Assembly: GCA_965644265.1 (NCBI GenBank)
Contig: OZ286472.1
Location: 51,150,001-51,214,000, forward strand
DNA length: 64,000 nucleotides
Direction: 5' to 3'
Origin: Glycera tridactyla
Lineage: Eukaryota
The notes beneath the pieces are model-generated. The model saw nothing but the letters and a program-made list of their open reading frames with translations. It was not told the origin of the DNA and made no database searches. The translations under genes were made by a program, and so were the position numbers. Shown here piece after piece: positions 3,501 to 43,900 of this stretch (position 1 is its first letter; every line of letters starts with the position of its first letter).

Positions 3501-4299
3501 TGTAATTAAATGAGATTCTGGTCATTACCTGTTGATATTGGTAATATGCCATTTTGTTCATACGTGAGCAGGGTCTCCCCTTGCCACTCGTAGTATATGC
3601 CCATAGCCTGTTGATCACTGATTTTTAATGAACCATTTGATAGGACAGGATGTCCGAGTTTTTTGGATGATTGGTTAGTCTGAAGATACGTTGAAATACA
3701 AAACTTTATTTATACTCTTCTCATATAAACTAGCTAGCACGGAGAATCTCTCTTCATTTAGATAAATTCACATTATGCTCTTCAAGCAACGGCTCTGTCA
3801 ATGACAATCATGGTGGTGGGTAGCGATGGTGTGTTGATAAAAGTGATGTTGTTAATAGTGGTGATGGTGGTAAATGTGGCAGCTGGTGGGTTGCTCAATG
3901 TCTCATGCACAGGGGCAGGGATACAGAGGCCCATGTAACGCAAGTGTGGTGGTATCACTCAAAACGTCTTCTCCTGGATCCCCGCGGGAAGGTGAATTGA
4001 TATGATCGATTGATCAAGTAATGCTTAACGTCTACAAACCCAAGCAGGATAATGTGAGACAGAAAGAATGGGCCAGTCCCCAAACATATTGTCTAAACAA
4101 TACTTGGTCTTTAAAAAAGATATTAGGGCCTATTGGTAAATTGCATGAATATCATTTTCTGTAGATCTTCCGTTTTTGTTGCAAAATAATATTGCTTGAA
4201 GAAAATAGCACACCTGTCGGGAAATTACAGGTTGAATCTTATACCAGCAATTAGCATAGAAACTATTAAATCAAAATGGGAAATAAACTATTAAATTAA

Positions 4300-14256: not shown

Positions 14257-14418
14257 CAGTGAAACCCCCTGATTAGAGACCGCCTCCTACGCAAGACTAC
14301 TTTTGCAGGGCAGCTTTTCTATTTGACATAGTCAAATATACCTGTGATGAGAGACCACTTCTTTCGACAGACCACTTTTTATTGATATCTAGGGTGGTCT
14401 CTCGTCACAGGTTCCACT
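14257..14418. mobile_element. CAGT MITE subfamily B, diverged
   Basis: cagtgaaacc start; internal ctatttgacatagtcaaatatacc shared with 16181-16358. Confidence 0.7.
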
Positions 14419-14503
14419 ATCATTGGTAGCAATTGCCAAATATTGGTGGGCTGTCAATACATATTCAATTACAAACTCTGAAATTGTTAGTGGCCATTGG
14501 GTA

Positions 14504-14680
14504 CAGTAAAACCTGTCTTGGGAGACCACCCAAAGCGCCAATGAAAAGTGGTCTCTCAAGACAGGTGGTCTCTCATCGGAGGTATATTTGACTATGTCAA
14601 ACAGAAAAGAGCCGATAGAGAGCGGTCTTCCATTAGAGGGTGGTCTCCCAAGAGAGGGTCTCCCAAGACAGGTTTCACTG
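14504..14680. mobile_element. CAGT MITE subfamily B
   Basis: ta|cagtaaaacctgtcttgggagacc...ggtctcccaagacaggtttcactg|ta; long TIRs. Confidence 0.9.
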
Positions 14681-14723
14681 TACTATCTTTTATGATAGTG
14701 TAGCCATTTGGTACCCACAGGTA

Positions 14724-14725
<2 letters not shown>

Positions 14726-14792
<67 letters not shown>

Positions 14793-14841
14793 AACACACA
14801 CACATGCATACACACCTACAGGCACAGGCACAAATGTATGT

Positions 14842-14910
<69 letters not shown>
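14726..14910. repeat. Compound (CA)n microsatellite; other CA/TG tracts at 11158-11219, 21509-21535 and 59039-59128
   Basis: Directly visible. Confidence 0.97.
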
Positions 14911-14913
<3 letters not shown>

Positions 14914-15019
14914 ATCTTTTTAAATTAATTAGGAATGGGAAGGGCAAGGGAAGGATGAAATCAACACCCTAGTCATTGTTAAAGAATTCAATAGGTGTTT
15001 ACCACTGGAGAACCTTACA

Positions 15020-15920
15020 TAATGATGGAAGGGAAGCCCAGAGGAGTGCGTTCATTACAGAGAGGTCTCACACAATAGAGACTCAGCGAATGATTTGCGT
15101 CGATTTCAGCCATTTCAAGAATGCGCACTATTAAGCAAGTTAGGCTTGTACACAAATGTGAACAAAGTAGCCTAATTGCCAATTTGTTAACAATAATTTT
15201 ACACAAAACATGACCAGGCTTTATGCCCAATGCTCTCTTCTCACTAATGAAACAATCATAGTCAAAATCCATCAAGAATTGAAGGAGGAGATACAACTTT
15301 AGTGACCCTGGCTAATGACCCGATTAGCATAATTACCGAGTCATTAGCAAGAAAATCGCACAAAATGTGACCAGGATCTGTGTGCAATGGTTGATTCTAA
15401 CCAATAAAACAATCAGAATCAAAATCCATTGAGAATTGAGGGAGGAGATACAGTTTTTGTGATTTTTAGCTGAAAACCCAATTAGGTGTTTCACAATTAG
15501 CCTCATTACTGAGTTGTGAAAATGAATTTTTGAAAAACCCGACCAACTTTTGTGGGCAACGCTTATATCTCACCAGTAAAACAATCAGAATCAAAATCCA
15601 TCAAAAATTGAGGGAGGAGATACGTTTTTGGTGATTCTTGCATAATCACTCAATTAGCCTAATTACTAAGTCATTAATGAGAATTTCACACAAAATATGA
15701 CCAGGATGTGTGTGTAATGCTTTGTCCTGTCTAATAAAACAATCAGAATCAAAATCTATCAAGAAATGAGGGAGGAGATGCATTGTCTGTGAATTGTGGA
15801 CGACGACGGACGACGGACGACAGACGACGGACGACGGACGACGGACGACGGACGACGGACGACGGACGACGGACGACGCATGATGGCATAAGCTCATCAG
15901 CCTTCGGCCAGATGAGCTAA
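15020..15920. mobile_element. Helentron-like non-autonomous element (DINE-1/HINE architecture)
   Basis: Four ~160-170-bp internal repeats (aacaatcagaatcaaaatccat...gagggaggagatac), a (CGGACGA)n microsatellite at 15797-15879, and a terminal hairpin agctcatc-agccttcggcca-gatgagct-aa. Confidence 0.7.
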
Positions 15921-16180
15921 CAAGTAAACTGAGAGTACAGTTAAAAACTGAGGCTTCAAAGTAATAAGACCCATGTTTTCAAACCCTTTCAGCCTCTGCA
16001 AATGTGAACCAGCAATGCATGTACCATTGCAAAAACACCCAGCAGAGGTGAATCTTCAATGGCAGAGTCACATTCTGCAATAGAGTGTATGATATTGCAA
16101 GGGTACATATGATACTGTTCATCCAATTCCAATTATTGAATTTTCTACAACTAATCAATATTTAGGAAAACTAGCTAGTA

Positions 16181-16358
16181 CAGTGAAACCTGTCTTGGGA
16201 GACCCCTCTTTTGGGAGAACACCCTCTAATGGGAGACCGCTCTTTATCGGCTCTTCTCTATTTGACATAGTCAAATATACCTCCAATGAGAGACCACCTG
16301 TCTTGAGAGACCACGTTTCATTGGCATTTGGGGCGGTCTCCCAAGACAGGTTTTACTG
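16181..16358. mobile_element. CAGT MITE subfamily B, inverted relative to 14504-14680
   Basis: ta|cagtgaaacctgtcttgggagacc...aagacaggttttactg|ta. Confidence 0.9.
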
Positions 16359-17191
16359 TATAGTAAATTCAATATGAACAATTTCAGCTACTGATCACAA
16401 GAAATTCAAATCCCAGAGCCATATTCTCAAATGCAAGCAGCACCAACAAACAATGATTCAACTTCATGAAAGTACTTTAGTTGATGGAAAAAAATTGATA
16501 ATGCAGCTTGTACATCTCATGGCACCTTATTCAGGGCAGATTTCTGACCTAGGAATTTGGATGTTATCAAAGAAATATCACCATCCATCGTGGTCTTTCC
16601 GAAAAACCAAACCAACTTCATATAGAAATGCCATGAATGAACAAGTTCATGGTGTGTGAACAAGTGAAACCTGACTAAGTACTAACATTGACTCTGCTAT
16701 TTCCCAAGGCTGAAAGGGTTGACAACTGACAACTGATGATGTTTAACAAAGCTGAAAGAAAAATCACCAAGTACAGATACAGAGTGGCATCCTATCCCAT
16801 TCATTATCTTCTGTGAATGAAAGACACATGCCCCTATTAACAAAAAGAACATTAGAACTGTGTCTTTCCATTCCAAGTATTTTCATGACCTCCATGTTAT
16901 CGTTTGGCAGAAAGCTCATTAAAGAATTGCGGTGATAAGAGTCATAAACAAGCTTCAAAACATGTCTGGAGACAAAATGACATTCACAACCTTCCAATTG
17001 ATCTAAGTTGATTCATGCTCAGGGAAGTGAAGAAAGTGGCGTGAGTTGAACTGAGCTGACAAGATGGATGACAATCACAGTGTGCGGCAGTGGCGGCGGC
17101 AGTGGCAGTGTTGTTGGTGGCGGTGGTGACCAGTCAACATGCATAACGTTCCGGGCGAGAACAGCACCGTGGCACGTTATTTCTCAACTCA

Positions 17192-17305
17192 TCATACGGC
17201 TGAGTGTTTCATGGAAGCCATACATTCGAGCAATGCCTCAACTGTCACCGCAACCTGTGATGTACCCTTCTCTTCCAAGATGGCCGACGGTGAGCACATC
17301 TTGTC
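17192..17305 (-). CDS. LRCH: LRCH distal alternative last exon: DKMCSPSAILEEKGTSQVAVTVEALLECMASMKHSAV* (soluble, PDZ-motif end)
   Basis: Acceptor ttggttgctag|GAC in phase 0, matching the phase-0 donor at 31122. Encodes 37 aa and ends in tandem stops TGA TGA. Resembles the ILEEKG..QVAVTVQALL C-terminus I recall for vertebrate LRCH isoforms. Confidence 0.9.
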   Translation of the reverse strand, partial: DKMCSPSAILEEKGTSQVAVTVEALLECMASMKHSAV

Positions 17306-19174
17306 CTAGCAACCAATAAAAACACACAGTTGGCATTATAAGGCAAAATCAAAATACTTTCAACGACAAAACAAAAATACATAATGTTCTTAAGACTGCA
17401 AATGTGAAATAAATGAAGAATGGTGATTACTTTCTAATATATGAATGGATATATAAATAGCATTTAAATATGACACGAAAAGCAAGAATTGCTGGGTTAC
17501 TTTCACCACTGTTGGACTGGCTTCAACTCTAAAATTTGCAAAACCTCATAAAGCAGATATGAGATTGCATCTGTACAAAACAAGGAGGACGATACGGGGC
17601 ACACAAGGAAGAATCTGCTGCAAGAACTAACCGACTAAGTGAGTAGGACATCTAGCCAATCAGGAGGGACTTCACAGCAGTGAGTGGAGGCAACAGTTTT
17701 GATTGGCCAAACATTACGACCAATCATATGCCATGTCAGTGTGAAGTAAAAAATTCATTACAACCAGTAGCAAAGTTGAAAACAGCAAGTGCTGCTAGAC
17801 AAAAGGACTACTTATATTTATAAACTATTCATATGTACACGATCAAAATGATCATGGCAAGGCCACAAATATTTGTGCATTGAAAAGGAATGACGCAAAA
17901 TATTTTTTTCTTTAAGTACACAATTGTTTTGTGTTTGGACCCAATAGCATCTCCAGCCTCATCAATACTTATATCATCAAAAGTGGTACAAACACACAAA
18001 TAATTGTAAATATATATCACAAAATATCCATGCCTGCTGGAAAGCACATATATACTAATTACACCTCAAAATAGACTTGGGTTTTCAGCAAATCATGTCC
18101 CTTTTAAGTGACACAGTGTGCACGAAGATTCTGGTGTGAATGTCACACAAGACTCATTACTTTGAGCATGGATGAGTCCATGGACTTGGGAGTCAACCAG
18201 CATCATGTGGAAGCCTATATAATTGTACAAGCAGGTCTCAAAAAGACTGTGGTGACCATTATGAAGGTCGACTTATAAACATTTCACCATCTGTCAAGTG
18301 AGTTACTGAGCTGCGTACCTAGGTAAGACACTATATTGAATGGAAATTTGCACTGACCCTAAATTGATTCAGTTGTTCAAATATGAGAGCCAAATATAGG
18401 TGATAAAACAAAGAATAATATTGGTTTGGTCTTTTATGGAATGCAATTCTTCGAGACATGATTCTTTTCATATACATTCAATTATTTTGAATGGGTTTTT
18501 TTCAGAGGGATTCTGTATAACTTTACTTCAGCTCAGGAATCAATTGACTGATGGTATAAAGACCATCTCCCGAGGGGCATTACATACAAATTTATACATC
18601 CTAAAGTACACAAGTACAAACTAAATCACTCCTCCAGTGAGTGAGTAAATATTCTATGATTTCAATTCTCTGGGTAAGCTATACAAGAAAGAGAAGATCA
18701 CAATTCTACTGGACATCAGAATACAAGTCCTTCCTAGAAGAATCCACATGCCATTAATAGCTCTCTTATTTCATTACGTCACCACATGAACTCAGAATAT
18801 CGGCCCAAACCCATAAAAAAATCCAAGATTTTCCAACCTCATTTAAATGACCAACATCTGAGTTTTGATGAAGCCCTATTATCTAGGGTGGTCTCTCATC
18901 GCAGGTTGAACTGGGAATGTTATCTATAGCAGTGATACATGATTGCGATGGAGAGCTGTAGTATTTCTCAAATTGGAACTGGGACATGAATAGTGACAGT
19001 AGTTGCTAAGAAGATTACCCATAGGGCACCCATAAAGTCATGAAACATTGCATCACTGCTGACTACAACACAGAAGTTCAGAATTTGTATGCTGTACTTT
19101 CCCAGATGGGTCAAAAGTCACATAGAGATCAGTATTTTCTATAAGTGCAAAAATGGATGATTTCTGTGAAATTA

Positions 19175-19318
19175 CAATAAAAACTCTTTTGGTAGATGGA
19201 CCCAAATGCCAACCACAAGCCGTCTCTCAAGAGAGGTGGTCTCTCATTGGAGGTATATGTGACTATGCCAAATAGAAAAGAAACAATGAAAAGCAGTCTC
19301 TCAAATAAAGTTTCACTG
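19175..19318. mobile_element. CAGT MITE subfamily B, diverged
   Basis: Internal ggtggtctctcattggaggtatat; ends tttcactg|ta. Confidence 0.7.
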
Positions 19319-20961
19319 TATATAAATATTGAATTCCATTCAATACTCTTCTCATTCAATAATGAATTTCAAAAGCAATATTCTTTGCAACTTCGAGATT
19401 GGATGACCAGAAATACAAAAATCCTATCGAGACTGATATGGAAGCTGAAGTCACAGATTGAGACATGTTACGAAACAGATATTTTGAATGTGCAAAACCA
19501 TATTTCGAATGCTCCAAGGAACACTTTCCCATAATGCCTGGGTTATGCCCTGATACATCTTTTACCACAAATCTCAACCAAGAAGACGTTCAGGAGACTT
19601 ACAGTGGATGGCTGGATCTTGCACCTGTCTCAGAAGCAAGCTTAAAGTTGTTATTATTCAAGCCAGCTTGGTGATGAGGCGGAGGAAATATCAACTGCGC
19701 CAGTGATCCAACAGCTGCATTGAGCAAAACTTACGATTTAACTATGTAGCATTGTTATACAATGTGAAATCTGTGAGCAAGCATTTGCATGCTTGAATAC
19801 AACTCCTCAATCATATTTCAGTATGATCTCTGTTAATGTTTGAATTTCCAGGATACGGTTTCATCAATGCATGAAACTTGTTCTACAAAATGAAATGAAC
19901 TTAAATCAGGCAAAAATTAAGACAGCATACTGCAATCGGTTATGATTCATACTGGATTATCTTTCAATAGTCTGAAAGGTCAATCAAGTACAATTATATT
20001 GCGTTGATCCCCAGAAAATTAAATGCCCAGAAATTATCATCGGCGGTTTTGAACTTGGCACCAACATGGCACCAATTTATGCCTGAACTGTGCCGGCAGG
20101 AGCAGTCTCCCTTCTGAGCCAAGATCATGGCTACAATTACAGCCAAATAAGCCAGGACTTCACCCCACATCTTAACCAGTCCGAGACATTGAAATGCAAT
20201 GAAATGAAATTTGACTAAACTGAAAGTAATCATAATCACACTCAGATGAGCGAGAATATGATGCTGCACCCATGACATGACTATCCCAATTCCAATATAG
20301 ACTACATCAGCTCTCCATTGTAACCAAACACTCTCTCATGTGCTTCCCAGATCTGTTATTCTATGGACAATCATGTAATGCACAATTTATCCTCGTTCCC
20401 ACTCCAGACCAGACTGTATTCATGCAACATTCCCCAAATATCCCCTTCACATTATCCAGTTATACAAAAATCATGTAAATAAAAATACAAAGAATAGAAC
20501 TGGCAAGTTTGAATGTGCTTGTGCAAACTCTTCACATCACAAATGATAATTGGGAAATACATCTTTAACCCATCCCCCATTTTTAAAAAAAATGCCCTGA
20601 TAATAAATATGACAAGAAATTACAATGCTAAATGATCCTATTCTAAACTTCTCCTTTTCCAACATGGAATGACTAGCATTTCATATGAAACCCCTCCTCA
20701 GCCATGACAACGAAATGTTCAACAGAAAGGAAAACAATGCTAAAATTCAATAACTGTTGGAACGAAAGGAAAATTGACAATCTTGAATAATATGATAGCA
20801 GGCGCAATTGAAAACAAAGGTAACTAAATATCCCATACTTAAGATGGACATTCAAATGATTCCCACAGAAATGTCAGCAACAAAGATTTCAAGATATATC
20901 ACACCACAAGGGTGAATGCTTTAGCTACAACTCAAAGACAAACTGATCAAACCCAAACAAT

Positions 20962-20967
20962 TTTATT
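20962..20967 (-). terminator. Candidate poly(A) signal for the TM isoform
   Basis: Minus strand AATAAA-attgtttgggtttgatCA-gtttgtctttgagttgt: canonical hexamer, a CA about 20 nt downstream, then a GU-rich element. It is the first AATAAA I found after the TM stop. Confidence 0.5.
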
Positions 20968-23257
20968 TTCAAACAAGGTTTCCCAGAACTAAAACACAAC
21001 AACCACTACAATGATGCAGAAAGCATGCATTGTGAAAGACAACCTGCATAATAGCTCATGCATATAACTACAGCATGCCTGTTGATCATTGGTTGATCTC
21101 CTGAGATCACAGCCAATGAGCAAAGCCCAATAAAAGCCAGCCATGTGATTGGCTTATTGTTAACCAATCATGAACAATGTTCCATACAGGCAGTGTGACT
21201 GACACTCAAAACAAACTTTGGGACAAAATAGCAAATCTAGCTCTAAGATATGAGAATAAGAGCAATAATTTATGAAAATATGAAAAAATATCTTTTTACA
21301 ATGAAAAATGTCAAGACATTAGCCTCATTTTGAAGACATCTTTGGAATTAGTTACAAAATTAAGTGAATGAATTTAGTTTTTAGTAAATCTCATAGGAAT
21401 GAACTCTGGATGGAAAGGCGACAATGTCTGATCTGGTGCCTTTAGAGGAAAAATATAAGCATCACATTTGTGCATAAAAAAGTATCACATTTTCCCTGCT
21501 CTGCAATGGAGTGTGTGTGTGTGTGTGTGTATGTGTTTCCGGATGTGGACATAGGGTTGGTGTGAACAGAAAGACAACACAAGGTTAGATTGGGCGTGAC
21601 ACAGCAGCTTGGATAGACGACAACACAACTACTACATCTACAGCACATGCATCGGCTAAATTGGTGAACAGTGAACACGACAGTAGAAAAATGCGTGCTT
21701 GACGGAAATCATGCTGGAATGTGACGAATGACTTAGTATTCACACAAGTACGGTGATTATTCTCTGAATGATTGCAAGATACTTCGATAATTTCAATTGT
21801 GAAAACTGAAATGAAGTGATGTTAATAAAAAGTGAGAGAATAATGGAGATGAACTTATGAAAGCCAATTCTCTGAGACGAAAGAAATAGGAGACCCACTG
21901 TCGTGTTATTTGAGTAGACAGAAAGAAACTAATCCAACTCCTCCTCATTTTTTTTGCTCGTGTCCGCACACGGTTAGTCCGACATACTATCCAAAACAAT
22001 TGCTGCAGAACACCATGGCCAGATGTCAGCGAAAAAGGATCCTAGCATGGAGAATTGCATGAATCCCACACAGATCAGACCAGGTCAAGTCATATGTAGT
22101 AATTTGAATACAGTGCTCTGATTGGGGAATTTGGCCATTGATCAAAAAGTAGTTCCTATCTTAATTTCTCAAATTCAGTGGGGTCGACACGGGGATATCA
22201 CTCAGCTTTCAGACATTCCTGTCATCTGGCATATTACATTTCCCCAGACATAGTAAAATACAAATCAAATGAATGATAGGTTTCTATCAAACTCGATGAT
22301 CAAACATTAAATGAAAGTGATGGGGCCAACCAATCACAATGTTCCATCCATTCAAAACCAATCACAGCGCTGACAAGACCAAAACATATGCAAATGTTCT
22401 ACCCCTAATCCACTCAGTCAGGCACAACCAAGACACAATCAAACCCAATGTTTATGTGTTAGTGTGATTCATGGGGAAGACATTTATCCATCTGGCAACT
22501 CTATCCTCATTGGTAATTTTGAATCCAGCCAGTGCAAGGTCATAGCCAGACAGAAAACATCCAATGGATCTGAAAATTTTGCAGCATTGAAAATGATGAA
22601 AACATCCTGTGCAGTATTTAGCAATTAGATGAAATTTGTGCTGAATAAAAGCGCAAAATTTGGTCAGCAATGCATGAGAACCTGATAAAAAGCCCTGAAA
22701 GAAATTCTGCGTTTTTATGTTTGAAAAAGATGACAATTAGTGATCTATCATCTTTGAAAAATAGGGGCTAATCTGTTGAAAAAGTGTTGATTTGATGGTG
22801 AATAAACTGTTTTACCATCTCATTTGTACAAAATGAATTTGGTTGATATGAATATGAATTTCAAGGCTAAGTCCCAGTCTTATGACATAAGTTTGTGTGG
22901 TGGACCAGATTTTCAGGAATATTTTTCTATTTCTACATGTGGGTCATTCACTGCCTGCAAATTGAAAGAATTTGATTGATGCCAATTCATATTTGCAGCA
23001 TCAAAGCTGTTGAGATGTTCTCCCTTCTGGCAGGGGATGGAAATATCCCTTCTCTATAAACTGCACGTACCAGCTCTGCTGGTTAATGCTCATGCCATTT
23101 TGGAACAATTATTACTTATTCATATCCAGCTACGCTCTAAAATCAAGACACTCAAGGCCTCCCTTTTTCAAGATGGCAGCCTGTATTCTGGCAACTCAGC
23201 GACGCATGCCCAGGTTATACGAACTACCGGTAATTATTGCATGATGAGAAGTTGGAT

Positions 23258-23437
23258 TTAAGCCTGGGGAAGATTGAGAACAATAAGAACAGTGAGGCAG
23301 AAAAAGGCGAAGCAAAGCCACGAGATGACGTGATCTCGCGTGGTCAGGCGAGGTATAAGGACTAATTGTTGCACAGTTTTAGCGACGCGGTATGGGCGTA
23401 ACTCTTCCAATATATCGTCGCATGCACACAGCGTGTC
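23258..23437 (-). CDS. LRCH: LRCH proximal alternative last exon: DTLCACDDILEELRPYRVAKTVQQLVLIPRLTTRDHVISWLCFAFFCLTVLIVLNLPQA* (TM tail)
   Basis: Acceptor ctatctttgccgtttcattgcag|GAC, phase 0. Contains the final CH helix (LC..DIL....V.KTV..L) followed by a hydrophobic stretch VISWLCFAFFCLTVLIVL a few residues before TAA. Confidence 0.9.
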   Translation of the reverse strand, partial: DTLCACDDILEELRPYRVAKTVQQLVLIPRLTTRDHVISWLCFAFFCLTVLIVLNLPQA

Positions 23438-23508
23438 CTGCAATGAAACGGCAAAGATAGGGCACATTGTCAGATGGCTAGTTGCTTCATGGTTATACTT
23501 TAGTTGGT

Positions 23509-23522
23509 GTTACCATGGTAAC
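23509..23522. promoter_or_regulatory. Perfect palindromic X-box GTTACCATGGTAAC
   Basis: Matches GTNRCC-N2-RGYAAC; lies ~70 nt from the TM exon acceptor. Confidence 0.4.
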
Positions 23523-25654
23523 AAAAAGAGAGCAGGGCTTGATAGTAATGTCCCCATGCCTGACCTCCCTCAATTGGAGCAAAACACTTCGAAGAAGGGA
23601 CAAAAGTATCAGGAATGAATAATATGAAAATTTATCTTCTCGTGTTCTGGGATGCAAAGTGCCATGGAACTGGGCCGGTCTTCTACAAGGTTCATTAGTC
23701 TCAAACCCTGCCAGATAATATCATAATAGAAACAATAATGACCTGGACAGCAAGAAATAATATCAAAATTATGGCAAAAATCTACAGCTCAAGGTTGAGA
23801 TCAGCAGGCAACAAACATTCATGGAATGATGGAAACACAGGTGGGCGGTTACTGTGGCTATTCCTCATAATATTGGCTAATTCTCAGTCAAAATAGAGAA
23901 ATGAAATGCACTCCATACATTGAGGTATCAAAGTCTGCTTCCATGCAAGTACAGCACCTCAGATATTTCTTTACAAATCTAATGCTTGATTTAAGAATCG
24001 AAAACTTCCTGATACCCAAAGAGAGATCTATGAAACAGCTCCTGACAAACATTCATGGGTTCAATTTTGACGTATCTTTTCTCATTTGAGATACACACTG
24101 GAATATGCAGCTTATATTCAAAGTTAAGATTTTTATTTGAAGCAGCATGACTTTCAAAGGACCTGCCTGAGAGCAGGTCAAATTTGGCCACTGCAGTGAT
24201 ACAGAAAGACGAAAAGCGGGCAAAAGAGTGAAAAAACAAATTCAAATGAAGTCAGGAAGGTGAAGCCAAAGTCATTAATTCTACACTGGTGTTAGGAGGA
24301 AAATGTCCTCCAGAAATCTGACAAGCCATCATTCGCAATGTGAGTGAAAAACAAAGCCAGAATGTGGGACTCCCTCATCAAAGAACCACATTATCTGGCA
24401 ATTCCAATTCACATGTGACAGCAACATAAATGATAAATCCTCCCAATATGGGAATCTTGATTCATCCGATATAATTGCCGATATGAAGCTGATATGCTTG
24501 GAGATCCCTAGTGCTAATTCAATATCTTAATTAGACTAGCATGAATAGTCACGGGGATATTCTCACTCCAGCTTTGACCCTACAATGAACTGTTTGCGCA
24601 AACATAAATTCATCAAGATGAAAACTGTGCAACAATTAGTTGGCCCTTGCTTAAAGCAAACTTAAGTGACAATCACCAATTTGTACCTGAAGCCTTCCCT
24701 AATTTCAAGATGATTAAAGCACTTCACAAATGGTCCAAGTTTCTCAGAATGTGTGTTAAAAGATCGTCTAGGATTTTAGTATGGCTAGATAAGTATGAGT
24801 GTAACTATTTTGTTAGGTGAATATTAGGAATAAGGAATTCTGAGGGAATAATAATCAGAAATGTTTACTACTCTAACTAGCCTACACTGACTGAATTATA
24901 ATTCAAATTGTGACCTGAATAAAGCACATAATTAGTTTTTCAATCATGCAGAGGACGAACAACTCTGGAATGTAACCGGGGGGTCTAAATGTAGAACAAG
25001 CCCTCGCTGAGGAAAGAACGAATCATCATGACGCCAAAATATCACAGAATGAAGGCATTTTCCTTTGTTTTATCCACCGCATGACAGAGCCAGTCACACC
25101 ACCTACTTGACAATTCATCTAGTTCTCATCAATAAAGAATGTGTAAAGACACATATATGAGCAAAAGAAAATGAGGTCATGAGCAATGATGACCTCCGAA
25201 CAACCACCACTTATGAGCACAACTGTGAGTAGGTAATATAGGCTAGCTGGACTTTAATCGACAATGTCGAATGGAATGGGCCATCCAAAAGTGATCTCTT
25301 AGAACAAGTACCTAATGCTGATAAATGCCCAGGGCAATTTTTACGTCACTTACGGTGGTTTTGTGAGAGAGTCCCCAATTGCATGTTCAACTCACCTCAG
25401 TGATCAATTAGTGCCCAGATTAAAATCCCACATTTTGATCAAAATCTTCAGAATGACAAGGACAATTTTTGTTTTCCAAGATGGACAGAGATGGGGTTCC
25501 CAAATAGTGATCTTTCCAAACAGGTCACCCATCAGGGCAATCATTTTCCATGCTTGTACTAGAATGGATTATTCCTACATTAACTCAATTTGAGCCCTTA
25601 TCATCTCCCTGGCTGGGTCACTAGAGGTCACAACACATCAAGGTCAAACACAGG

Positions 25655-25864
25655 CAGGGTTGCATCCAGGATTTACAAAATTCGGGGCAAATGCCCCCTC
25701 AAATTCAAGAAAAGGGGAAATACCCAAAATGGATCCACTCAATACCAAAAAGTGCACACTCCTCGCTGAATCAGGAAGCATTGTGGCCCTTAATCGTCTT
25801 GAAAAGGGGCACAGAGTCACAGAATTTGTGAATTGCCCCCAAGCCCACTCTGGATGCAACGATG
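25655..25864. mobile_element. CAGGGTTGCATCCAG TIR MITE (hAT-like)
   Basis: TIR cagggttgcatccag / ctggatgcaac; 6-bp flanks cacagg and cacaag; second copy at 48975. Confidence 0.7.
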
Positions 25865-26537
25865 CACAAGTGGTGTGGTCTCTTAAAATATGAATAACTA
25901 TTCCTGTTTAGTGAATAAATAAATTTACACCAGAATATCACACTCACTGCCACTATTCTTAAATCAGACAACATAGAGACCAGAGGGGATATTATTCATC
26001 GCACACTGATGTTACCATAGTAACAGAATGATATTTGTGGATTAGAACATTTAATAACAGACATGAAGTGTATCCAAACTTGACACCACACAAGATATTA
26101 GTAAAAATGGACATAAAGTTCCACCACAAATAAAGCTCGGGACAATACATATTCAACTGCCAGCAGGGCGGAGGATAACACGACCAAACAAAGACTGGAG
26201 GACATACTTCAGGACAGAAATGTTTGCATACAATCGAAGATGACTTGTACACAAAACGTTGTGAACACATAACGTGCAAACATACAGATGATGCAGACAT
26301 TTATGTGTTGTGGATAAATGCAACTGAATGGTGTTCGGGATGAGTGTACTTCGACTGGGTTGATTTGACGGAAGAATGGAGTACTGTAGATAAGACTATG
26401 TGTAATGATAATCGGGCAAGAAGGGGCAAGTACTCCCAAGTCGGGTAAGGTTTTAGTTATTTGAAAAAGACCAGAAACCCACTTCTTTCACTGCAGGTTC
26501 ACTTACAATAAAACCTGTGACAAGCAAGCACTTTATG

Positions 26538-26690
26538 CAGTCAAACCTGCTAATGAGACCACCTCTATATGAAGGCCACCTGCCTACATGGCCACCCTGT
26601 GTAATGACTGTGTGAGTATTTTCCACTATAAATGACCTCTCTATAAAGACAACACAGGTCAAAACCACTGTTGTTTTCAAGATTTCATGG
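26538..26690. mobile_element. CAGT MITE subfamily A, partial
   Basis: cagtcaaacctgc...gaccacct...aaatgacctctctataaagac. Confidence 0.6.
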
Positions 26691-29150
26691 ATCAAAATAC
26701 ACAGTAATCCATACCAGAGCAACCACAATTCAAACCAAGAAAAATTTGTAATTTCTGATAACTTGATTTGTTCAAGAACTGTGAGTTTGATGAACTGTTA
26801 ATGGCTCTGTGGGACAGTGAAATGGTGCAATTCACCACCTCCACCTTAATCTGGTCCAGGACAGATGTATCAATATCAATTTCACACACCGCAAGAACTT
26901 ATGGTTGCAGGTATATCAGGGATCTACATGGAACTCCTGCCCTAGTAGAACTAACAGGCAGGTTGAGAGGAAAGGCTGGTAATTTCATTAGCCTACCTGC
27001 CCAATGAGCATATTCACAACTGTCATTCAGGCTATGATAATATGCTGCAAGGCAGAGGGAAAATGAAGAGACTGCAGGTTGAAATCCCACTTCAATTGCC
27101 CAAAGGACAACTGGAGGAAAAAGTTCCTGTAGAGCCCTGTATATTTGTGAAGGAATGAGACGAAAGTGACTTTGGAAAAATGGTTGCGCATAGGTTCCTC
27201 GGTACCCTCAATTCAAAACAGGTGCTCTTAGCTGCTGCAGATTTAGGAGCGCATGTCATTTATACGTTCAACCGAATATAGGCCAATCAAATAATTGGGA
27301 CTACAGACTAGACAACATCATCTAGTCATCAGCTGGTACCTCCCTTTTACACTTTTGTACATCACAAAAGATTTGGAATGGACCCAGACTGATACGAAAG
27401 TGACAATAATTGCACTGGTGTGAAATTGATAGGAAAAGTCAAGCATAATCGGTTGCACCAAAAACTTACTCCAAAGTTACTTGTTTGGGTTTAGCCTCCT
27501 ATCAAATGAGATGAACTTTTCACAATGGAAGAGGCCATATTTGTGAAATCCATCAATGCATTTTGCAGGAAAATGTGATAATTATTCTATTGTGAATGTG
27601 ATCCTCATATTTCTCTGTTTTTCGGTGAATGTTTATTTTGTATCAGAATAATTTCATAAGTTTCTAATCACACTACACCTAAAGAAGCAGAAAGATATTA
27701 TAACTGCATAATGAATGAAGAAGATATTCCTGATGGCAAGACAGACCAAGCATACAACTGATGACTGAAGGAACAAAAACCACCACGGACCATCAATAGT
27801 GAAAACCACAAAAAGACGGCAAAAGTGAAATACATGGATGCAAACTGATGACGCAGAGAGAGAATGTGATGCTACTAGGGGTGCATGACATGATACAATG
27901 CTGAAGAAGTGACGGCCAGTGCTTCTTGCTACCATGAACAGCCACTAGGGGGAGGGAAGCAGTTGCGGTGATGAAAGTCAGAACAAATTTTGCAAAAGAA
28001 TATCATTCGACTGAACGCGGGTGATCTACAGCAATGCTCAAATCTACTTTTGGTCACCTATCAGTCAATTCTTTATAGAAGAAAAATATGTGAAAAAAGT
28101 CTGATTTCATTGGCTGATTTCTAAAAGAGCATTTCCTGCGATATTCATACAAATTATTTCACTTTTACTCACTATTTAAAGCACATATTAAATGAGTATA
28201 CAAAGTACCCTGTCAGCAATGTGTCATCTGTGACTCCAGTCATGGCAATTTTTGACTATAGACAATGGAATCAATTTTTAATAATTTCTCCTATTGATGT
28301 TTTATGAAAACGAGTTAAGACATTCGACTATGTGAGATGGCAAACTGCCGACTCTTAAATGAGTGACGCTGGTACTAATTATCTCACAACTCATATGTTA
28401 AATCTGATTGATGGCTGTGCACTCACAGACCTTTCGGGAGGTCTTTGTTTGCCCTTATCTAAAGACCAAATATATATAACAGTGAAACCTTTGAAAAGAG
28501 ACCACACTAAATGGGCAACGAAAACTGTCCTGACTGAACAGCTGGTCTCTCATCATGAAAATATTGAACTAGAAGAGGCTTCAAATTAGTCTTTCAATAT
28601 GGATGGTCCACGCCAGGAGAGGTGCAAGAAACAGGGTCACAAAAAAGTAGAGCAGCATTGCAATAATATTTTTGTCCTTGCCCTAATATGAAGGTTAATT
28701 CCCAATTTCTGATCTAAAGTAGGTGATTTCAAAGCCACCCTTATTCCTTGAACTACTGAAATCAATGAATCCTTGATCACATATTCTAGAATGTTGCCAT
28801 GCTAATTTATCAGGATACAGTTGAGAATCGGTTCACGTGTAGCCATGAGTTCAAAATTATGAGCTACATCCACATAACATTTCTCTGGTATCAAAAAGAA
28901 GTTTACCCATGCAATTTTGATTAAGGCACCAAAAACAGACAATTGTATGAAATTCCGATTATCCTAGCTTCGAAAGAAGTAATTTTCCTGGTGAAATTTC
29001 CCAAATAGATGTTTCCCATCAATCCAGAGTTCAAAGGTAATGAGAATCACATATTTGGGCAGACATGGACAATCTGACTCAATGAAATTTTGACAAATTG
29101 CCAAATATCCGGTGCAGGATGACTACATTGGAGAAGGTACGGGTTGCATA

Positions 29151-29289
29151 CAGTTAAACCTGCAATGAAATATTCCTGACAACAGACCATCTCCAAATGA
29201 AGACCACTTTCCCGGGGAAACTTATATATCTCCTGCAAGACCAATTTTTTGGTGACATTTGGGATGGTCTCTCACCACAGGTCTCACTG
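29151..29289. mobile_element. CAGT MITE
   Basis: ta|cagttaaacctg...caggtctcactg|ta. Confidence 0.7.
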
Positions 29290-29437
29290 TATTTCAGGCC
29301 AGATGAGCTTATCGGAAGTGCAAGGGGCAAATTACAGTAATATGACTGAATGACTTGAATCAAAATGGCTGATGCCAGAAAATATATGTGACACAGCATA
29401 TTACTTCAATTATACCTGAAAATGAGCCCAGCCATAG

Positions 29438-30012
29438 CATCACTGATGCCAGAATACCACATCAATGATGTTCAAATGAGTGCGCCAAATTCAAACATCA
29501 CTGATGTTCAAATCAATGTGCCAAATACCATCACTGATGTTGAGAGAAATATCCCAGTTCCAACATCAGTGATGGTGAGATAACGGTGCCAAAATTACCA
29601 TTTGTAATGTCTGCCAAAGTCACTAATTGCATCAATGATGCTGAAATGAGTGACGAATCACAATACTATTCTGACGATAAACAAGCTGAATATAACATCA
29701 TTGATGCAATGATGAAGGTAACAAATTTAACATCACTGATGTTTCAAAATGCACAAGCCAAATTCAAACATCACTGGTGCTTTGGGATAAAGAGCCAAAT
29801 TTAACATCACTGTATATATATGATAGGAGTCATGTTTGATATCACTGACGTTAGAATGCAGGAGCCAATTCCCACCATCAATGCTGTGAGAATCAAAACA
29901 TCAATGATACCGGACTATGGTGGACTCATCCTAATGTCAGTGATAGAGAAGGTATACACTTAATGATTATAACGATTACATGATATAGGTATGAATTCAT
30001 GACATCAATGAG
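29438..30012. repeat. Degenerate ~33-36-bp minisatellite with a palindromic CATCA-N-TGATG core
   Basis: About 14 core copies, e.g. 29438, 29460, 29497, 29529, 29563, 29629, 29696, 29731. Confidence 0.7.
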
Positions 30013-30513
30013 GCTATACTGGTGAGGTTAAATCTCGACATTTTTTGTGATCTGTCCGGAGCAAAAGAGTACCCTAAATGAGTGCATTAGAATGGATGCA
30101 GTAATAAGCGAATCACTCCTGATTCGAACCTCTCCCTGAACATATTCTTGAAAATTGAGTGCACAACCTACAAGTTGAAATTTGGTGGTCAAATACCACT
30201 CATTTCCCACCACGATGTGTACAAACACAGGTAAGATATCAGGTGTGGAAGCCATTTCTGGTTCGCTCTACAAAATTCTTCTTAAAACATTTGAATACAT
30301 AACCCCACCACGACAGAGTACACCCCTTTTGCTGATGATATTTTGCGATAGTATATCCTTGTAGGCACTTACATCAGGAATGGAAGTGAGATTTCCCTAA
30401 CTTTCACTGACTTTTTTTCTAACCAAAGTTCCTAAACATAAGAATTCCTGACTTTCTACTGATCTATGGGGATCCTGTACAGCTGGTGATGAGTGTGTTC
30501 TCACTTATGTATG

Positions 30514-30874
30514 CAGTCTTCACGAAAAACTTTTTCAACAACTCTCCCATCGGGAGAGCAGATTGGGAGAATCACTCTCCCGAAAATGAATTCACTCTCC
30601 CGAAATTGTGCAAGTACCACTAATATATGTTTTCATGAGGTAAATTCTTCAGAATCATACATGTGCAGGGAAATGCAAAGCCTACTAATAGGGACTGGAG
30701 ATTATCGGTAGTGTAGTCAAAATTGTGGTGTTCTGTCTTCACAGAAAATCCATCACTCTCTCATCAACTGAAAATTTTTCACTCTCCCATCAGGAGACTA
30801 AGTTGAAAGTTTCACTCTCCCGAAATCAAATTCACTCTCCCCGGGATTCGGGAGAGTGCTAAATTCGAAGACTG
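30514..30874. mobile_element. 361-bp TIR element with a 6-bp TSD and subterminal CACTCTCCCGA repeats
   Basis: tgtatg|cagtcttc...gaagactg|tgtatg; about 8 copies of actctcc near both ends. Confidence 0.75.
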
Positions 30875-31121
30875 TGTATGCATGCACTTGAATGCATTCA
30901 TCTAGGGTACAAAATTGCGGCAGTGCAGTTTTTGCAATGCAGTCAACCAATGTAAGAAGTGCTGCTCCTAATTCAAGATATCAATGAACATGGTCACAAC
31001 CTGATACTTCACCAACAATGCGGGGGAGATGGGGTTAATATTAAAGAGCATGTAGCATTAGGGAGGTTATCTAATATGTAGCCTATCAATAATCGAAGGA
31101 GTCAAATCAAAAGTTTCTTAC

Positions 31122-31199
31122 CGGACTGACACCTATACGCCTGGCTGCCTCGAGAAAATTCTCCACATTTCGTCGACATTTGGCCATCGACAGTTTTGG
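31122..31199 (-). CDS. LRCH: LRCH CH-domain exon PKLSMAKCRRNVENFLEAARRIGVSP
   Basis: tttctcag|CCA...CCG|gtaag; 78 nt; phase 0-0. Confidence 0.96.
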
Positions 31200-32637: not shown

Positions 32638-32775
32638 CACAGCGGGAGACGGGACATGTATACTGGAGACTGAGCGAGGTCGTACATGATTTGCAAGATG
32701 ACAGAGTACAACACCGTCCTTCAAAGCTGCTGGAAGGTCATCAGGTAAGGTCACCTTCAAACGGCCCTCGATAGT
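32638..32775 (-). CDS. LRCH: LRCH CH-domain exon TIEGRLKVTLPDDLPAALKDGVVLCHLANHVRPRSVSSIHVPSPAV
   Basis: tttctttgttcacag|ACT...GTG|gtgagt; 138 nt; phase 0-0; contains the DGVVLCHL CH motif. Confidence 0.97.
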
Positions 32776-33478: not shown

Positions 33479-33612
33479 TACTCGTAACTGCTCTATCATT
33501 TCACACTCTTCCTGGGCTTGTGCGAAGTGGCGGCGTATGGTGAATGCTGGATTCATGCTGTTTAGGTCCTTGCTCATCTCCTCCAGACCTTTCTGGACAG
33601 CAGGAGGCAAGG
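33479..33612 (-). CDS. LRCH: LRCH pre-CH exon (A)LPPAVQKGLEEMSKDLNSMNPAFTIRRHFAQAQEECEMIEQLRV
   Basis: ttttgtttttctag|CC...GTA|gtaagt; 134 nt; phase 1-0; contains the P.FTIRR...EQLR motif of LRCH proteins. Confidence 0.93.
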
Positions 33613-35662: not shown

Positions 35663-35936
35663 CTAAATAGGTGCCGTGGTAACAGAAGACCCAAAGCAGG
35701 AACGGAAAAAAAAGAAAACAAGACAAAACGGCATTCAGACATCACACAGCAACTACCATGCAGGTGCAACAGGCGTGATCATTGTACATTTATTCACCAC
35801 AAATTCACCAATACAGAGACATCTTTCTCATCAACTAGTCAATCATGGAACTTCTATACACACATAGTTGATTATTAATCCAGATGCATTCAGATATCAT
35901 CCAGATTCTTTCTTAGGCCATGGACATTGCAGTATT

Positions 35937-36138
35937 CAGCGATGTACATTAATCTTTTTCCCCTTCGGGCAGGTGAAGTGTAATTACACTTCACCTGCCC
36001 TCCCTGTCATTTTCACCTCTTCCTGCATATAATCATAGACTAAATAGTGGTTAGGTACCTGCCCATCGGACTGGCAGACTGATAAAATCACCTGCCCTAA
36101 CAACAAATCCACCTGCCTGTGTCTCTAGGGCAGCCCTC
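35937..36138. mobile_element. hAT-like MITE with CACCTGCCC motifs; related copy at ~41060-41188
   Basis: Repeated cacctgccc/gggcaggtg; terminus ttaatgta(g/c)a..cctg shared between the two copies. Confidence 0.55.
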
Positions 36139-37200: not shown

Positions 37201-38108
37201 ATATCTGATCATTCTATAATCATAATGACTGGTTAGACTGACATCTAGACCCAGAGTGAAGCTCATGCTTTTGAGCTCAACACTTCCACCAGCTAGTAAT
37301 TTGCGATAATGGGAATATGAGACATCAGAACATTGCATTGATTTGGTGATTTCATATAAGATGCCTCAGTGCACCATCTGACACAAAGTCGGCTGAATGC
37401 TAACAAACTTGAATTGAATGAAAATCACTAAACAATATGGATTTTATTATCACAATCTCGTCACTAATTTGAAGATTCTGTGGATCCTAGATTCAGCTGC
37501 ACGCCATGAAGTACTAGGAGTATGAATGGGAAATATTGTCCTTTACAAAGTGAGAAAACTTCAAAAGATCAGGTAAAAGTCCATCGTCTAGTGCAAAAAA
37601 GGTAATGAGTATCCATGATAGGATACCTTGATTCAGGACAAAAGTTGAAAAAGTTGTGCACTAGTGATTGTTACAGAAATTGTTAAATTGAACACACACA
37701 TTCAAGACAAGACATTATTCCACAAGACAAGACACTATTTTCATGAAATTAGAATCAACAGAGTGAAAAGAAATGTATTAGCCGATAATGGGAAGAAAAA
37801 GATTAAGCGATGAATGTTTCCTTGACATGTATGCAACTACATCAATTTCAATTTTGGTGATAGGAAATGAACATCATGAAATGTGAAACGTTGACGAGCA
37901 GTGCGACAGATAAAACCTGCCAGAGGATGCCAAATCTGAACTTTTGGTCAAGGATTGACCATCCATTAATTGTGCTACATGACACAAATTACTTAGCTGC
38001 ATATAATAAACATGCAGTATGCTCAAAGTGTGCAGCAATTTGTCAGGCGATAATTGATAAGTAATGAACGAGATAATTAAAAATGGCGAAATGAATGAAT
38101 ATGATATA

Positions 38109-38264
38109 CAGTGAAGCCTGCAATGAGAGACCACCTCCAGCGGGAGACCTCTTTTCCAAGGCAGCTTTTCTATTTGACATATTCAAATTTACCTCCGACG
38201 AGAGACCACCTATTTTGAGACCACTTTTTGTGACATTTAAGGTGGTCTCTCGTAGGTTTGACTG
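38109..38264. mobile_element. CAGT MITE subfamily B
   Basis: cagtgaagcctg...ctatttgacata...aggtttgactg. Confidence 0.75.
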
Positions 38265-40701: not shown

Positions 40702-40944
40702 ATAATCACCAACCTGAATCGAAACTTTATTGAAATAAGAATACAGTGCATCTTTCTGAATTTGCCGTATTCTATATTTCTCAGGATCTTCACCACCTGG
40801 TGGTCTTAATCGAAACTGTTCATCGTCCTGCTGTTGTAGCTGTATGAGTCGTTGTTTCTCTTGTTCAAGGCACATTCGTATCCGCTGTGCTTCCTGGCGC
40901 TGCGCTTCGATCATAGTCTGATGACGTCGCCGATACTCTGCCTC
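40702..40944 (-). CDS. LRCH: LRCH coiled-coil exon EAEYRRRHQTMIEAQRQEAQ...EDPEKYRIRQIQKDALYSYFNKVSIQVGDY
   Basis: gttacag|GAG; donor TAT|gtaagt (CAG|gttggt at 40714 is an in-frame alternative); 243 nt; phase 0-0. EKYRIRQIQKDAL resembles the EKIRTKQIQRDAV segment I recall from vertebrate LRCH. Confidence 0.85.
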
Positions 40945-43900
40945 CTGTAACACAAATTCCGCCATGCCTTGCCAATCAGAATGACATGTTTTTCATCTCT
41001 CATCTGATCAGAGTTAGAAACGCTGAGAATGTGAGTGATGAGATGGTCCTATGAGAAGTCAGAGCTCAATGGTAAAGCCCTTACTAGCTCATTTACATGG
41101 AGAAGGGCAGGTGAAAATGTTGGGAGAGCAGGGGAAAATTCCACATCACCTGCCCCAAAGACAGGTGAAAAGTTAATGTAGAGCCCCAAATTCTGATCAT
41201 TGGCAACCAAATGGTCAGTCCATCAAATGTGATCGGCTGTTAAAAATAAAACTGATTTTTTTTTCATGAACCATACAGTAAGTTCTAGCTCCTGAATCTA
41301 TCACGAATTGATGAGATGATCCAATGAACTAACTACTGGCTAGCTATCACAATTCGGATTTGGCTACTTGAATGTGACTAACAATGGCTAGTCAGGCTCA
41401 TAAATATCTCAAACAAACAGTGGAAGCTGGTTGTTTTCAGAGACAATTAGGGTGGCTACTCCAGACATATTTTGCTGAGGATCGTACATGGACAGTACAT
41501 CTCCCACTGTACAGAGCGACCCTTGTTGTAAGGAGATGAGGGATTTTGATGGCTGAATAAGGTGCACGGTAAAATTTGACAATAAGAGTAGAGGATGATG
41601 AACAATGCCCTACTGATAAAATGAAAAATGCTTTTGGAATCTCAATATATTCTCTCCCATGGTGATGATACAACACAAGTTATGTTTGCCACTGATACAA
41701 TCAACTTGAAGACAGATAGATACAAATCCAGATCAGATTGGAGGCTAAAAGACTTTTTATCTCTGATTGTCAATTGATAGGCTATACTGATACTGATCAA
41801 GCAAAAGCAGCTGGAATGAGGTCCTTGCTCAAGTGATGTGACACGCTCCACAGTGCTTACCACAAGGGGACCATAGCAACCCATGGCAACTGACTATGAT
41901 GTCATAAGTGAAACCAAAAATGAGGCTGCTGGGTGTGGGCTCCAATAATATTTGGTAAGTGCATTCTACACAGCTTTGAACGCATCATAATGATGAGATG
42001 GAAACAGACCACTTCCAAATCCTACAAAATTAGTGATGCAATCAACATCGCTGGAATCTCTACAAAATTAAAAGCAAGCAAGGAATGGTAGAATAAAAGA
42101 CTGGCTTGAACACAAACTGTTTAAAATGCGAGGTAAATCTTGGCATTTAATAACCATTAACCATCTAGGAGTAAAGTATATTCAGTTGTTACCACTTCTA
42201 TGGTTAATTAAGCTACTTCTGTTAAAATGAAAACCAGACTAAACTTATGTGAATCCTACAAAATGCCTTCATCACAATGTTGAACACAACCACACTCATG
42301 CATTTGACATTAAGTACTAGAAATTGACTATTCATACTTGAGCTATATTAGCTACATTTTGTTTCTTCTACTCTGGTGCTGTAATGGAAAAAATATGAGG
42401 GCGCACAATTTTCAAGGACACAGCTTGTTTGATCAGGGTAATATGAGAATATTATTCCATCTACTTCCTTGACCTCTTCACTTCTGGTTAACTGATTCTC
42501 CAAGCTGCCTCAGTATTTCCCAATCCAACAAGTTATATTACGTAATGGCCAGAGATGAAGCGATCAAGTGTGACAGATTGTATAAATCTCCCACAGGTCA
42601 GATGGGGCCAGGTCATGTGTAGTACTCCAAATTCTGGATTCTGATTGGTCAGTGTGTCAGTTAGTTGGAAAGTAGTCCCTACATAAACTCAATCCTTTGA
42701 TCAAAAAACGTAGCCATGGTATGAAAACAAGATCATAATCCTTTACAGGTGAGGTAATGAATTACACTTGATACAATTGGCATGGCAATTTCACTCAACC
42801 ATTGGCCTCATGAAGTGCCTCGGCAATTCCCACCTTCTGACAGAGTTCTACTCTCATGTTTTCTTACTATGATATCCAAACAAATAAGTTGGCCAAGAAT
42901 TAGCTTCCAAATGCATTTCCAGTGAAATTACCATTCGAAATGCCATGGCATTGGGTGCCCGACTTTGCAGCATATAGAGGGCTGTTATGTTCATAGATGA
43001 CAATAAAGGCGTTGTGTGTCAGAGAGCATGGGTACCATTGTTATCCTGTAATTACCTTCATACACTATTTCAACAACCACCAGCCAAGTCCCACAAGGAA
43101 TTTACTCCATATTTATTTGAATTTGAGATCCCTCCAGAAGGTTGGTTAAATTGGAAGGCATCCCTATCAATCCCAATGACATCACAACATGAGAAATGAC
43201 TGCATCCTTTTGATGGAAATAAAAAGTTTGTCAGACTTTCAAATTTCCTATCCTTGCCTTCCAGACTCATCCAAATATTGCATGAAAGAGGCCATGCCTT
43301 GAAAATAGATGTAACCATTGAAATATTGCATCAGTGCTTTCTATCTTATCTACTATATGTATGCAAAACTGTTTGCTCATCTACCTTCTTTTTGATTTTA
43401 TGGCTGATGTGACATGATTCGAACATGAGCTACAACACACACTGAAAGATTGAACCTGTGCATGCGTGCAAGTGAGCACATGAATAAGACAGGCAGGCAG
43501 ACATAGTCACAGAGGCAGACAAAGTCCCTTATATATATCTTAACGTAAGCAGATGCTCATCAGTGCAAATGAGTGTCAGATAAACTTGAATATTAGACCA
43601 CCTGAAAGAAATACGGTCATGAAGTCTGTGGGATGAGCCTTAGAAAAACTCAATTGAGAGAACTTTATGGTTGAGTTGAAGCAAAGATGTGAGCAATCTA
43701 CAGGTAGTTTGTTGTCTATTGTACATCCAAACTTCAAGCGGAACTTCCGAGTTGCAATGATTTTCTCACGTTACCACAGCAACCAGTTGAACCTGCTCCA
43801 AGATGAGACGCCCCCAGAGGAGGAGCCCATAAGGCATCTCAAAAATTTATCACAAGCAAGGCCTTAAATGAACTACTCCACTTGTTTCAAACACAGATCA

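Follow-up and report, generated by a model that had tools for sequence, protein, structure and literature searches.

Tandem exon duplication gives rise to a class of alternative exons, and tail-anchored proteins form a class with a single C-terminal transmembrane domain (TMD), no signal peptide, and post-translational insertion. Here we describe a locus that resembles both, the 3′ part of a leucine-rich-repeat (LRR) and calponin-homology (CH) gene, LRCH, on the minus strand of a 64,000-nucleotide stretch of Glycera tridactyla DNA (the window; GenBank assembly GCA_965644265.1, contig OZ286472.1, positions 51,150,001 to 51,214,000 of the forward strand). Isoforms with and without a transmembrane (TM) segment, which the initial annotation of this locus had named for vertebrate LRCH1 and LRCH3, have been reported for three human genes (LRCH1, LRCH3, and LRCH4) and for mouse LRCH4, with a putative TM segment in two of the three human LRCH1 isoforms and in the longest isoforms of human LRCH3, human LRCH4, and mouse LRCH4 (PMC7536344). 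How the TM and non-TM forms differ in function is posed as a question in the same review, and neither isoforms nor a TM segment are mentioned by Foussard et al (2010). The TM/non-TM switch itself is well supported but largely known, having been published for vertebrates, and both ends are present in the NCBI annotation of many invertebrates. In the literature open to search, we found no paper that treats the two LRCH ends as a duplicated exon pair of bilaterian age, or that describes a tail anchor or PDZ-type ligand in LRCH; the single text match was to a plasmid name, LRCherry. The comparative points made here, that the exons are old duplicates in a shared order, add modestly and unsurprisingly to what was known.

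The arrangement in the window is, very probably, that of one LRCH gene with duplicated alternative last exons, which provide either a membrane anchor or a soluble end in S-A-V. The last constitutive exon of the CH domain (31122 to 31199, minus strand, as are all LRCH exons described below; 26 codons, PKLSMAKCRRNVENFLEAARRIGVSP) ends after a complete codon in a phase-0 donor, AGTCCG/gtaaga, at 31122. The proximal terminal exon, exon A (23258 to 23437), lies 7.7 kb downstream of this donor and begins at an acceptor with a strong pyrimidine tract (...tttgccgtttcattgcag/GACACG at 23437). Its open reading frame is intact, with 59 codons (DTLCACDDILEELRPYRVAKTVQQL...VISWLCFAFFCLTVLIVLNLPQA; stop at 23260-23258) that specify, in order, the last CH helix, the linker PRLTTRD, the hydrophobic segment HVISWLCFAFFCLTVLIVL, and the residues NLPQA before the stop. 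The distal terminal exon, exon B (17192 to 17305), lies 6.1 kb beyond exon A, with the two acceptors 6,132 bases apart. It begins at the acceptor ...tttttattggttgctag/GACAAG at 17305 and encodes 37 residues (DKMCSPSAILEEKGTSQVAVTVEALLECMASMKHSAV), comprising the last CH helix and then a short soluble tail ending KHSAV, followed by a double stop that ends at 17189. Both exons have good acceptors, are in frame with the 31122 donor in phase 0, and carry their own stop codon. The initial annotation had placed the donor at 31122 and the acceptors at 23437 and 17305, with one phase-0 donor serving both exons, and on re-reading the sequence these positions and frames proved exact to the base.

Both exons resemble the ends of annotated LRCH proteins. 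In tblastn searches with such proteins, exon A was matched with an E value of 5.5e-15 by TM isoforms of Lingula, and exon B with an E value of 7.9e-6. Over 125 residues, the spliced form that ends in exon A shares 73% identity with the TM isoforms of Lingula; the form that ends in exon B is 72% identical over its full 109 residues to isoform X3 of Haliotis asinina and 76-80% identical over ~100 residues to amphioxus and vertebrate LRCH3. Exon A alone shows 39-56% identity to the TM tails of eight species, linker and hydrophobic helix included, and is clearly a conserved coding exon.

The initial annotation had also proposed that the two exons descend from an ancient duplication of the exon for the last CH helix, and several comparisons agree with this proposal. 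Exons A and B are reciprocal best local matches (BLOSUM62) among the 1654 open six-frame segments of the window, with a score of 45 against 32-39 for the next best, and the same scan yielded no additional copy of this exon. We aligned tails from other animals, nine of the TM type and eleven of the soluble type, and compared the two profiles with hhalign, which placed columns 1-29 of one in register with columns 1-29 of the other (probability 95.4%, E 1.7e-8). In a maximum-likelihood tree of 29 residues and 22 rows, from which arthropod and vertebrate TM tails were left out for their indels and divergence, all A-type rows are split from all B-type rows with support 97/89 and the window exons fall with their own type; within the A and B groups, the 29 columns resolve nothing. 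Because the profiles align and the tree splits by type rather than by species, the two exons are old duplicates, neither recent copies nor a chance likeness. Since this split by type goes together with the occurrence of both tails across phyla, the duplication predates the protostome-deuterostome split.

Both tails are found on single genes in other animals. In Tubulanus polymorphus, the RefSeq isoforms X1, X2, X3, and X5 of LOC141911413 carry the TM tail and X4 ends ...NPSLSTV. Among the RefSeq isoforms of one Lingula anatina gene, X3 ends ...QQSTV and X4 ends in the TM tail ...ISWMCLVVFLGTCLLLGFHPWFI. On one contig of Branchiostoma lanceolatum, LRCH3 model P0078 has the TM tail and models P0272-275 end ...QTSAV. 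More broadly, the C termini of proteins matched by the upstream CH exon in a library scan fall into the same two types. TM-type tails are annotated in Priapulus, Lineus, Haliotis, Gigantopelta, Mytilus, Ruditapes, Octopus, decapods, a millipede, beetles, and vertebrate LRCH1 and LRCH3, and soluble tails in Haliotis, Littorina, Penaeus, a barnacle, beetles, and vertebrates. Both types occur among gastropods, decapods, insects, and vertebrates, often in different species. When the TM tail of Lineus (P0165:948-1007) was used as the query of a region search, the sole match was to itself. The suggestion that the switch predates vertebrates is therefore upheld by the presence of both tails in Tubulanus, Lingula, amphioxus, molluscs, and arthropods. 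For the LRCH field, the TM/non-TM choice seen in a few mammalian isoforms is an old duplicated-exon switch, with both tails in spiralians, ecdysozoans, amphioxus, and vertebrates.

Exon order was checked directly in three genomes, those of the window, Tubulanus, and Lingula, and it is the same in each, with the core followed by the TM exon and then by the soluble exon. In the Tubulanus locus (L001), the core is at 35933-36010, the TM exon at ~37944-38120, and the soluble exon at 43003-43113; in the Lingula locus (L002), the corresponding positions are 18383-18460, 24894-25076, and 27099-27212. The comparison of orthologous loci proposed in the initial annotation thus finds the TM exon first and the soluble exon second in both. 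The retention of these old duplicated exons across phyla, in the same order in three genomes, argues that both forms are functional. The Tubulanus locus contains a further copy of the soluble exon, at L001:45694-45804, which is 2.7 kb from the first and has an identical translation; it reflects either an artefact of assembly or a tandem duplication of recent date. The Lingula assembly contains two copies of the CH exon (L002:9079-9156 and L002:18050-18127), and LRCH is split into a 775-residue LRR model and a 541-residue CH model, which is probably an assembly or annotation artefact.

The same exon order is read by three models deposited as 'hypothetical protein' (P0012 from Batillaria, P0015 from Nucella, and P0109 from Gambusia), two from gastropods and one from a fish, each of which runs the TM exon into the soluble exon, so that the last CH helix is present twice in the protein. 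Such fused models are most likely prediction errors that a model with two terminal exons would correct, and the comparison flags them as annotation errors in other species.

RNA evidence was drawn from four sequencing runs of one study (X1 to X4), which hold 8-14% of the words of 16900-23500, with contigs mapped over 17180-23179, a stretch that ends short of exon A. All four runs have a contig on 17180-17306 that continues past it; these contigs measure 793, 2088, 378, and 842 nt in X1 to X4, respectively. Because the continuation of the X2 contig on exon B is the exact sequence of window positions 31123-31152, the last 30 bases of exon 31199-31122, the junction from 31122 to 17305 exists in RNA, exon B is used, and the runs are indeed RNA-derived. 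This junction, predicted in the initial annotation, was accordingly found in the contigs of the one study's four runs. The only difference inside exon B is at 17252, where G in all four runs replaces the A of the window, a synonymous change (GTT to GTC, Val) and therefore a polymorphism or strain difference. The 3′ untranslated region (UTR) of the exon B transcript is long because the X2 contig extends 1839 nt below 17180, giving at least 1.9 kb by contig. It would span ~2.8 kb, from 14378 to 17191, if it ends near 14383, where the first AATAAA occurs. For this genome, the 3′ model of the LRCH gene is thereby fixed, with two terminal exons, a distal 3′ UTR of ~2.8 kb, and one RNA-confirmed junction.

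Contigs of runs X2 to X4 that end at 20189 and 22263 were considered as extra exons between A and B and rejected, since their continuations are absent from the window; they probably derive from transcribed copies of a repeat at other sites and not from LRCH exons. An interspersed repeat that resembles a short interspersed nuclear element occurs at 19180-19379 and 16250-16350 (...CCCAAATGCCAA...GGTGGTCTCTCATTGGAGGTATAT...), where contig word depths add up to ~10,000 in each of the four runs and there are many different loose contig ends. The copy near 16250-16350 is within the exon B 3′ UTR, and a search of Rfam with the repeat gave no match.

We propose that, after the donor at 31122, the pre-mRNA would either be spliced to the proximal exon A at 23437 and then cleaved downstream of it, or skip exon A and be spliced to the distal exon B at 17305, with its 3′ UTR of ~2.8 kb. 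The choice would be set by competition between the acceptors at 23437 and 17305 and by whether cleavage and polyadenylation downstream of exon A precede use of the distal acceptor. The initial annotation had called this alternative polyadenylation, a description that holds in the sense of an alternative-last-exon choice, in which splicing is coupled to 3′-end formation, and does not hold in the sense of alternative polyadenylation within a tandem UTR. Both exons would stem from a single tandem duplication that took place before protostomes and deuterostomes diverged. Each would supply a type-3 CH domain with its last short helix and its final helix, to which exon A would add the linker P-R-[IL]-T-x-x-D and one hydrophobic helix ending about five residues from the C terminus, and exon B about ten residues ending in S-A-V.

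That either exon could complete the CH domain is suggested by orthologues with each kind of ending. We compared the end of the Pfam CH match in Lingula isoforms X4 and X3, Tubulanus isoforms X2 and X4, and Priapulus, and with either ending it extends ~29 residues into the alternative exon, as far as position 104-107 of the 109 in the profile. The solved CH domain of calponin (1h67) aligns through an exon B-type segment, to residue 104 of 108. Each terminal exon is thus predicted to supply the last ~29 residues of the CH domain, which would be complete in both products, in agreement with the claim of the initial annotation that each isoform rebuilds it.

The locus can be compared with the described systems in some detail. 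Like vertebrate LRCH1, LRCH3, and LRCH4, it belongs to the LRCH family and its products differ from the same point on, immediately following the ...IGV-x-x with which the penultimate CH exon closes. In both, one product ends in a C-terminal hydrophobic helix and another in a short soluble tail, which in vertebrates is often ...SAV, and the fused Gambusia model has the same exon order. Vertebrates differ in having four paralogues, whose TM tails carry linkers that are longer and divergent. The LRCH genes of Tubulanus and Lingula (annotated 'LRCH2-like', X1-X7) are also alike in that one gene has two C termini with the signatures of exons A and B in the same order, whereas their introns measure ~2-6 kb against 7.7 and 6.1 kb in the window, and Tubulanus has the second, identical soluble exon. 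As in tandem-duplicated alternative exons, the LRCH pair is adjacent, homologous, of the same phase, and specific for the same structural element, and its members would be used one at a time; the pair is also kept in Tubulanus and Lingula. Unlike tandem-duplicated cassette exons, the LRCH exons are terminal, each with its own stop and presumably its own 3′ end, so that the choice between them involves 3′-end formation.

Several of our observations count against parts of this account of the locus. For the equivalence of the two CH ends, AlphaFold models of two Lingula C-terminal regions were of low confidence, with mean predicted local distance difference test scores of 59 and 50; they were made from shallow alignments of nine and ten rows with the first CH helix cut off. 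In these low-confidence models, helices occur at like positions in both forms (53-69/70, 80-84, and 89-101/102), with an extra helix at 107-129 in the TM form, which weakly supports equivalent CH ends.

The function of the soluble end is where an alternative retains the most weight. Exon B ends K-H-S-A-V-stop, in agreement with the class I PDZ pattern [S/T]-x-hydrophobic, and in 11 hand-picked aligned soluble tails S is at position -2 in at least 90% and V at position 0 in all. We infer that S-A-V is a class I PDZ ligand. The endings [ST]-x-[VIL] occur in 22 of 54 distinct soluble tails, from brachiopod, nemertean, gastropod, crustacean, amphioxus, and vertebrate, counts that are not phylogenetically independent. 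Such an ending is absent from many soluble tails, among them those of insects and several vertebrate paralogues, which end IVN, LFT, AAV, or VSM, and the literature search turned up nothing linking LRCH to a PDZ-binding motif. It is therefore a possibility of some substance, although the less favored one, that S-A-V is not a PDZ ligand and is kept for another reason or by shared descent only. Against this stands the recurrence of S-[AT]-V in brachiopod, nemertean, gastropod, amphioxus, and vertebrate, and of T-P-V or S-N-V in crustaceans, which is far above the ~3% estimated for a random C terminus, though the sequences are not independent. The [ST]-x-[VIL] ending is probably ancestral and lost in many lineages.

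The orientation of the TM form is a second point of disagreement. The segment HVISWLCFAFFCLTVLIVL, residues 36-54 of the 59 encoded by exon A, has a mean Kyte-Doolittle hydropathy of 2.44 and is followed by five residues, which places a candidate TMD near the C terminus. In 30 distinct orthologous TM tails, the hydrophobic segment ends 3-10 residues from the C terminus. In 13 orthologous TM isoforms, the N terminus is hydrophilic and the sole strongly hydrophobic 19-mer outside the LRR region is the C-terminal one; over their first 40 residues, the 19-residue mean hydropathy does not exceed 0.6 in 12 of them and reaches 1.33 in the remaining one, from a fish. Because there is a single C-terminal hydrophobic helix and, in the orthologues, no signal-peptide-like segment, the TM form is predicted to be tail-anchored, with its LRR and CH parts in the cytosol. 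The locus shares with tail-anchored proteins the one hydrophobic segment of ~20 residues close to the C terminus and, in orthologues, the hydrophilic N terminus. It departs from that class in that the only functional paper on an LRCH TM isoform assumes the opposite orientation. The N terminus of the window gene is outside the window, and the absence of a signal peptide was checked in orthologues only. The published view of LRCH4, which conflicts with a tail anchor, puts the LRR and CH parts outside the cell: as summarized in the review, only TM-containing mouse LRCH4 supports lipopolysaccharide binding and signaling, and the TM segment is taken to place LRR and CH on the exterior (Aloor et al, 2019; PMC7536344). 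That the TM form is such a surface receptor seems unlikely given the features of the orthologues just described, and the LRCH partners named in the review (DOCK proteins, septins, and myosin VI, with 'DISP complex' as an annotation name; PMC7536344) are cytosolic.

The tail has a further conserved feature. A juxtamembrane motif, P-R-[IL]-T-x-x-D, at exon A positions 29-35, and a helix start [ST]-[YW]-[LM]-C are conserved from Priapulus to molluscs and brachiopods in the alignment of TM tails, which hints at a role in targeting or in binding a specific partner.

That this organism uses exon A is itself inferred from conservation, and exon A could instead be a conserved-looking relic, with only the soluble exon B form made here. 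The junction to exon B is the only one seen, in contigs mapped over a stretch that excludes exon A. There is no contig depth at 22980-23179, part of the presumed exon A 3′ UTR, or at 20980-22179 in the same four low-depth runs. Neither AATAAA nor ATTAAA occurs within 2.3 kb of the exon A stop, the first canonical AATAAA downstream being at 20962 to 20967 on the minus strand, 2.3 kb away. However, the intact 59-codon frame, the strong pyrimidine tract of the acceptor, and the identity of exon A to the TM tails of other phyla along linker and helix all speak against a relic. Moreover, the word depth of LRCH contigs is only ~5-8, too low for assembly of a rare or tissue-restricted isoform from these runs. 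We consider a relic distinctly improbable, and prefer the reading in which exon A is used.

Serial use, in which exon A would be an internal exon spliced on to exon B, can be rejected as highly implausible: the three fused models and the phase-0 GT dinucleotides within exon A are in its favor, but those models are 'hypothetical protein' predictions, all six GTs are poor donors (GTCGCT, GTGCAA, GTCCTT, GTCATC, GTTCTT, and GTTCTC), the product would hold the last CH helix twice, the Tubulanus and Lingula RefSeq isoforms end in one exon or the other, and the RNA contig joins 31122 directly to 17305.

Taken together, the alternative-last-exon arrangement allows a broader and more tentative reading, to which we give somewhat less than even weight. 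The pair would be a bilaterian last-exon device more than 500 million years old, in which the TM form is truly tail-anchored on the cytosolic face of a membrane, the soluble form is directed to PDZ scaffolds through S-A-V, and the conserved juxtamembrane motif and conserved TMD residues mark a specific partner or a targeting signal beyond simple anchoring. If this is true, the TM product would tether an LRR-CH scaffold, with its DOCK, septin, and myosin partners, to a membrane, contrary to the 'extracellular LRR' picture of LRCH4. The architecture makes predictions on two points listed as open in the review, namely the orientation and membrane of the TM form and the presence of a PDZ-type end on the soluble form (PMC7536344).

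Upstream of the shared donor, the window contains further exons of the same gene. The CH-domain exon at 32638 to 32775 has 46 codons (TIEGRLKVTLPDDLPAALKDGVVLCHLANHVRPRSVSSIHVPSPAV; TIEGRLKV...DGVVLCHLANH...HVPSPAV), is in phase 0 at both ends, and has the donor GTG/gtgagt. On its own, it scores 25.3 bits against the Pfam CH profile, just under the cut-off of 26 (E 1.9e-5, profile positions 25-54), and a full scan of a representative protein library with its 46 residues gave 484 matches at E of 0.001 or less, with identities up to 91%. The exon that precedes the CH domain (33479 to 33612; ..EMSKDLNSMNPAFTIRRHFAQAQEECEMIEQLRV) has the donor GTA/gtaagt at 33479 and an acceptor at 33612 or 33592, and was matched in tblastn by 53 LRCH proteins. 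Further upstream, a charged, coiled-coil-like coding exon at 40702 to 40944 (EAEYRRRHQTMIEAQRQEAQ) has the acceptor ttacag/ at 40944 and a 3′ boundary at 40714 or 40702, with a weak tblastn match to the Lineus LRCH protein P0165 (37% over 73 residues, E 2.6e-5). Spliced constructs of 109-131 residues are 72-80% identical to annotated LRCH proteins end to end, in keeping with a type-3 CH domain, and CH domains from calponin and from Vav in the PDB match the LRCH orthologue. The orthologues matched by the window exons carry LRR_8, LRR_4, and LRR_1; in the window gene, the LRR exons would lie beyond the window end. These matches identify the minus-strand gene as a predicted LRCH orthologue.

Two other features of the window were noted. 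Inside an LRCH intron, 61855-63986 is a degenerate, ACC-rich minisatellite of ~2 kb with a 19-nt unit (ACCACCACCACCACCATGG) in ~44-49 copies per block, with 63-67% matches, a GC content of 0.56, and a strong GC skew. On the minus strand at 3087-3521, an open frame of 145 codons is similar to the C-terminal portion of retroelement polyproteins, with a sub-threshold Pfam match to DUF6451 of 18 bits.

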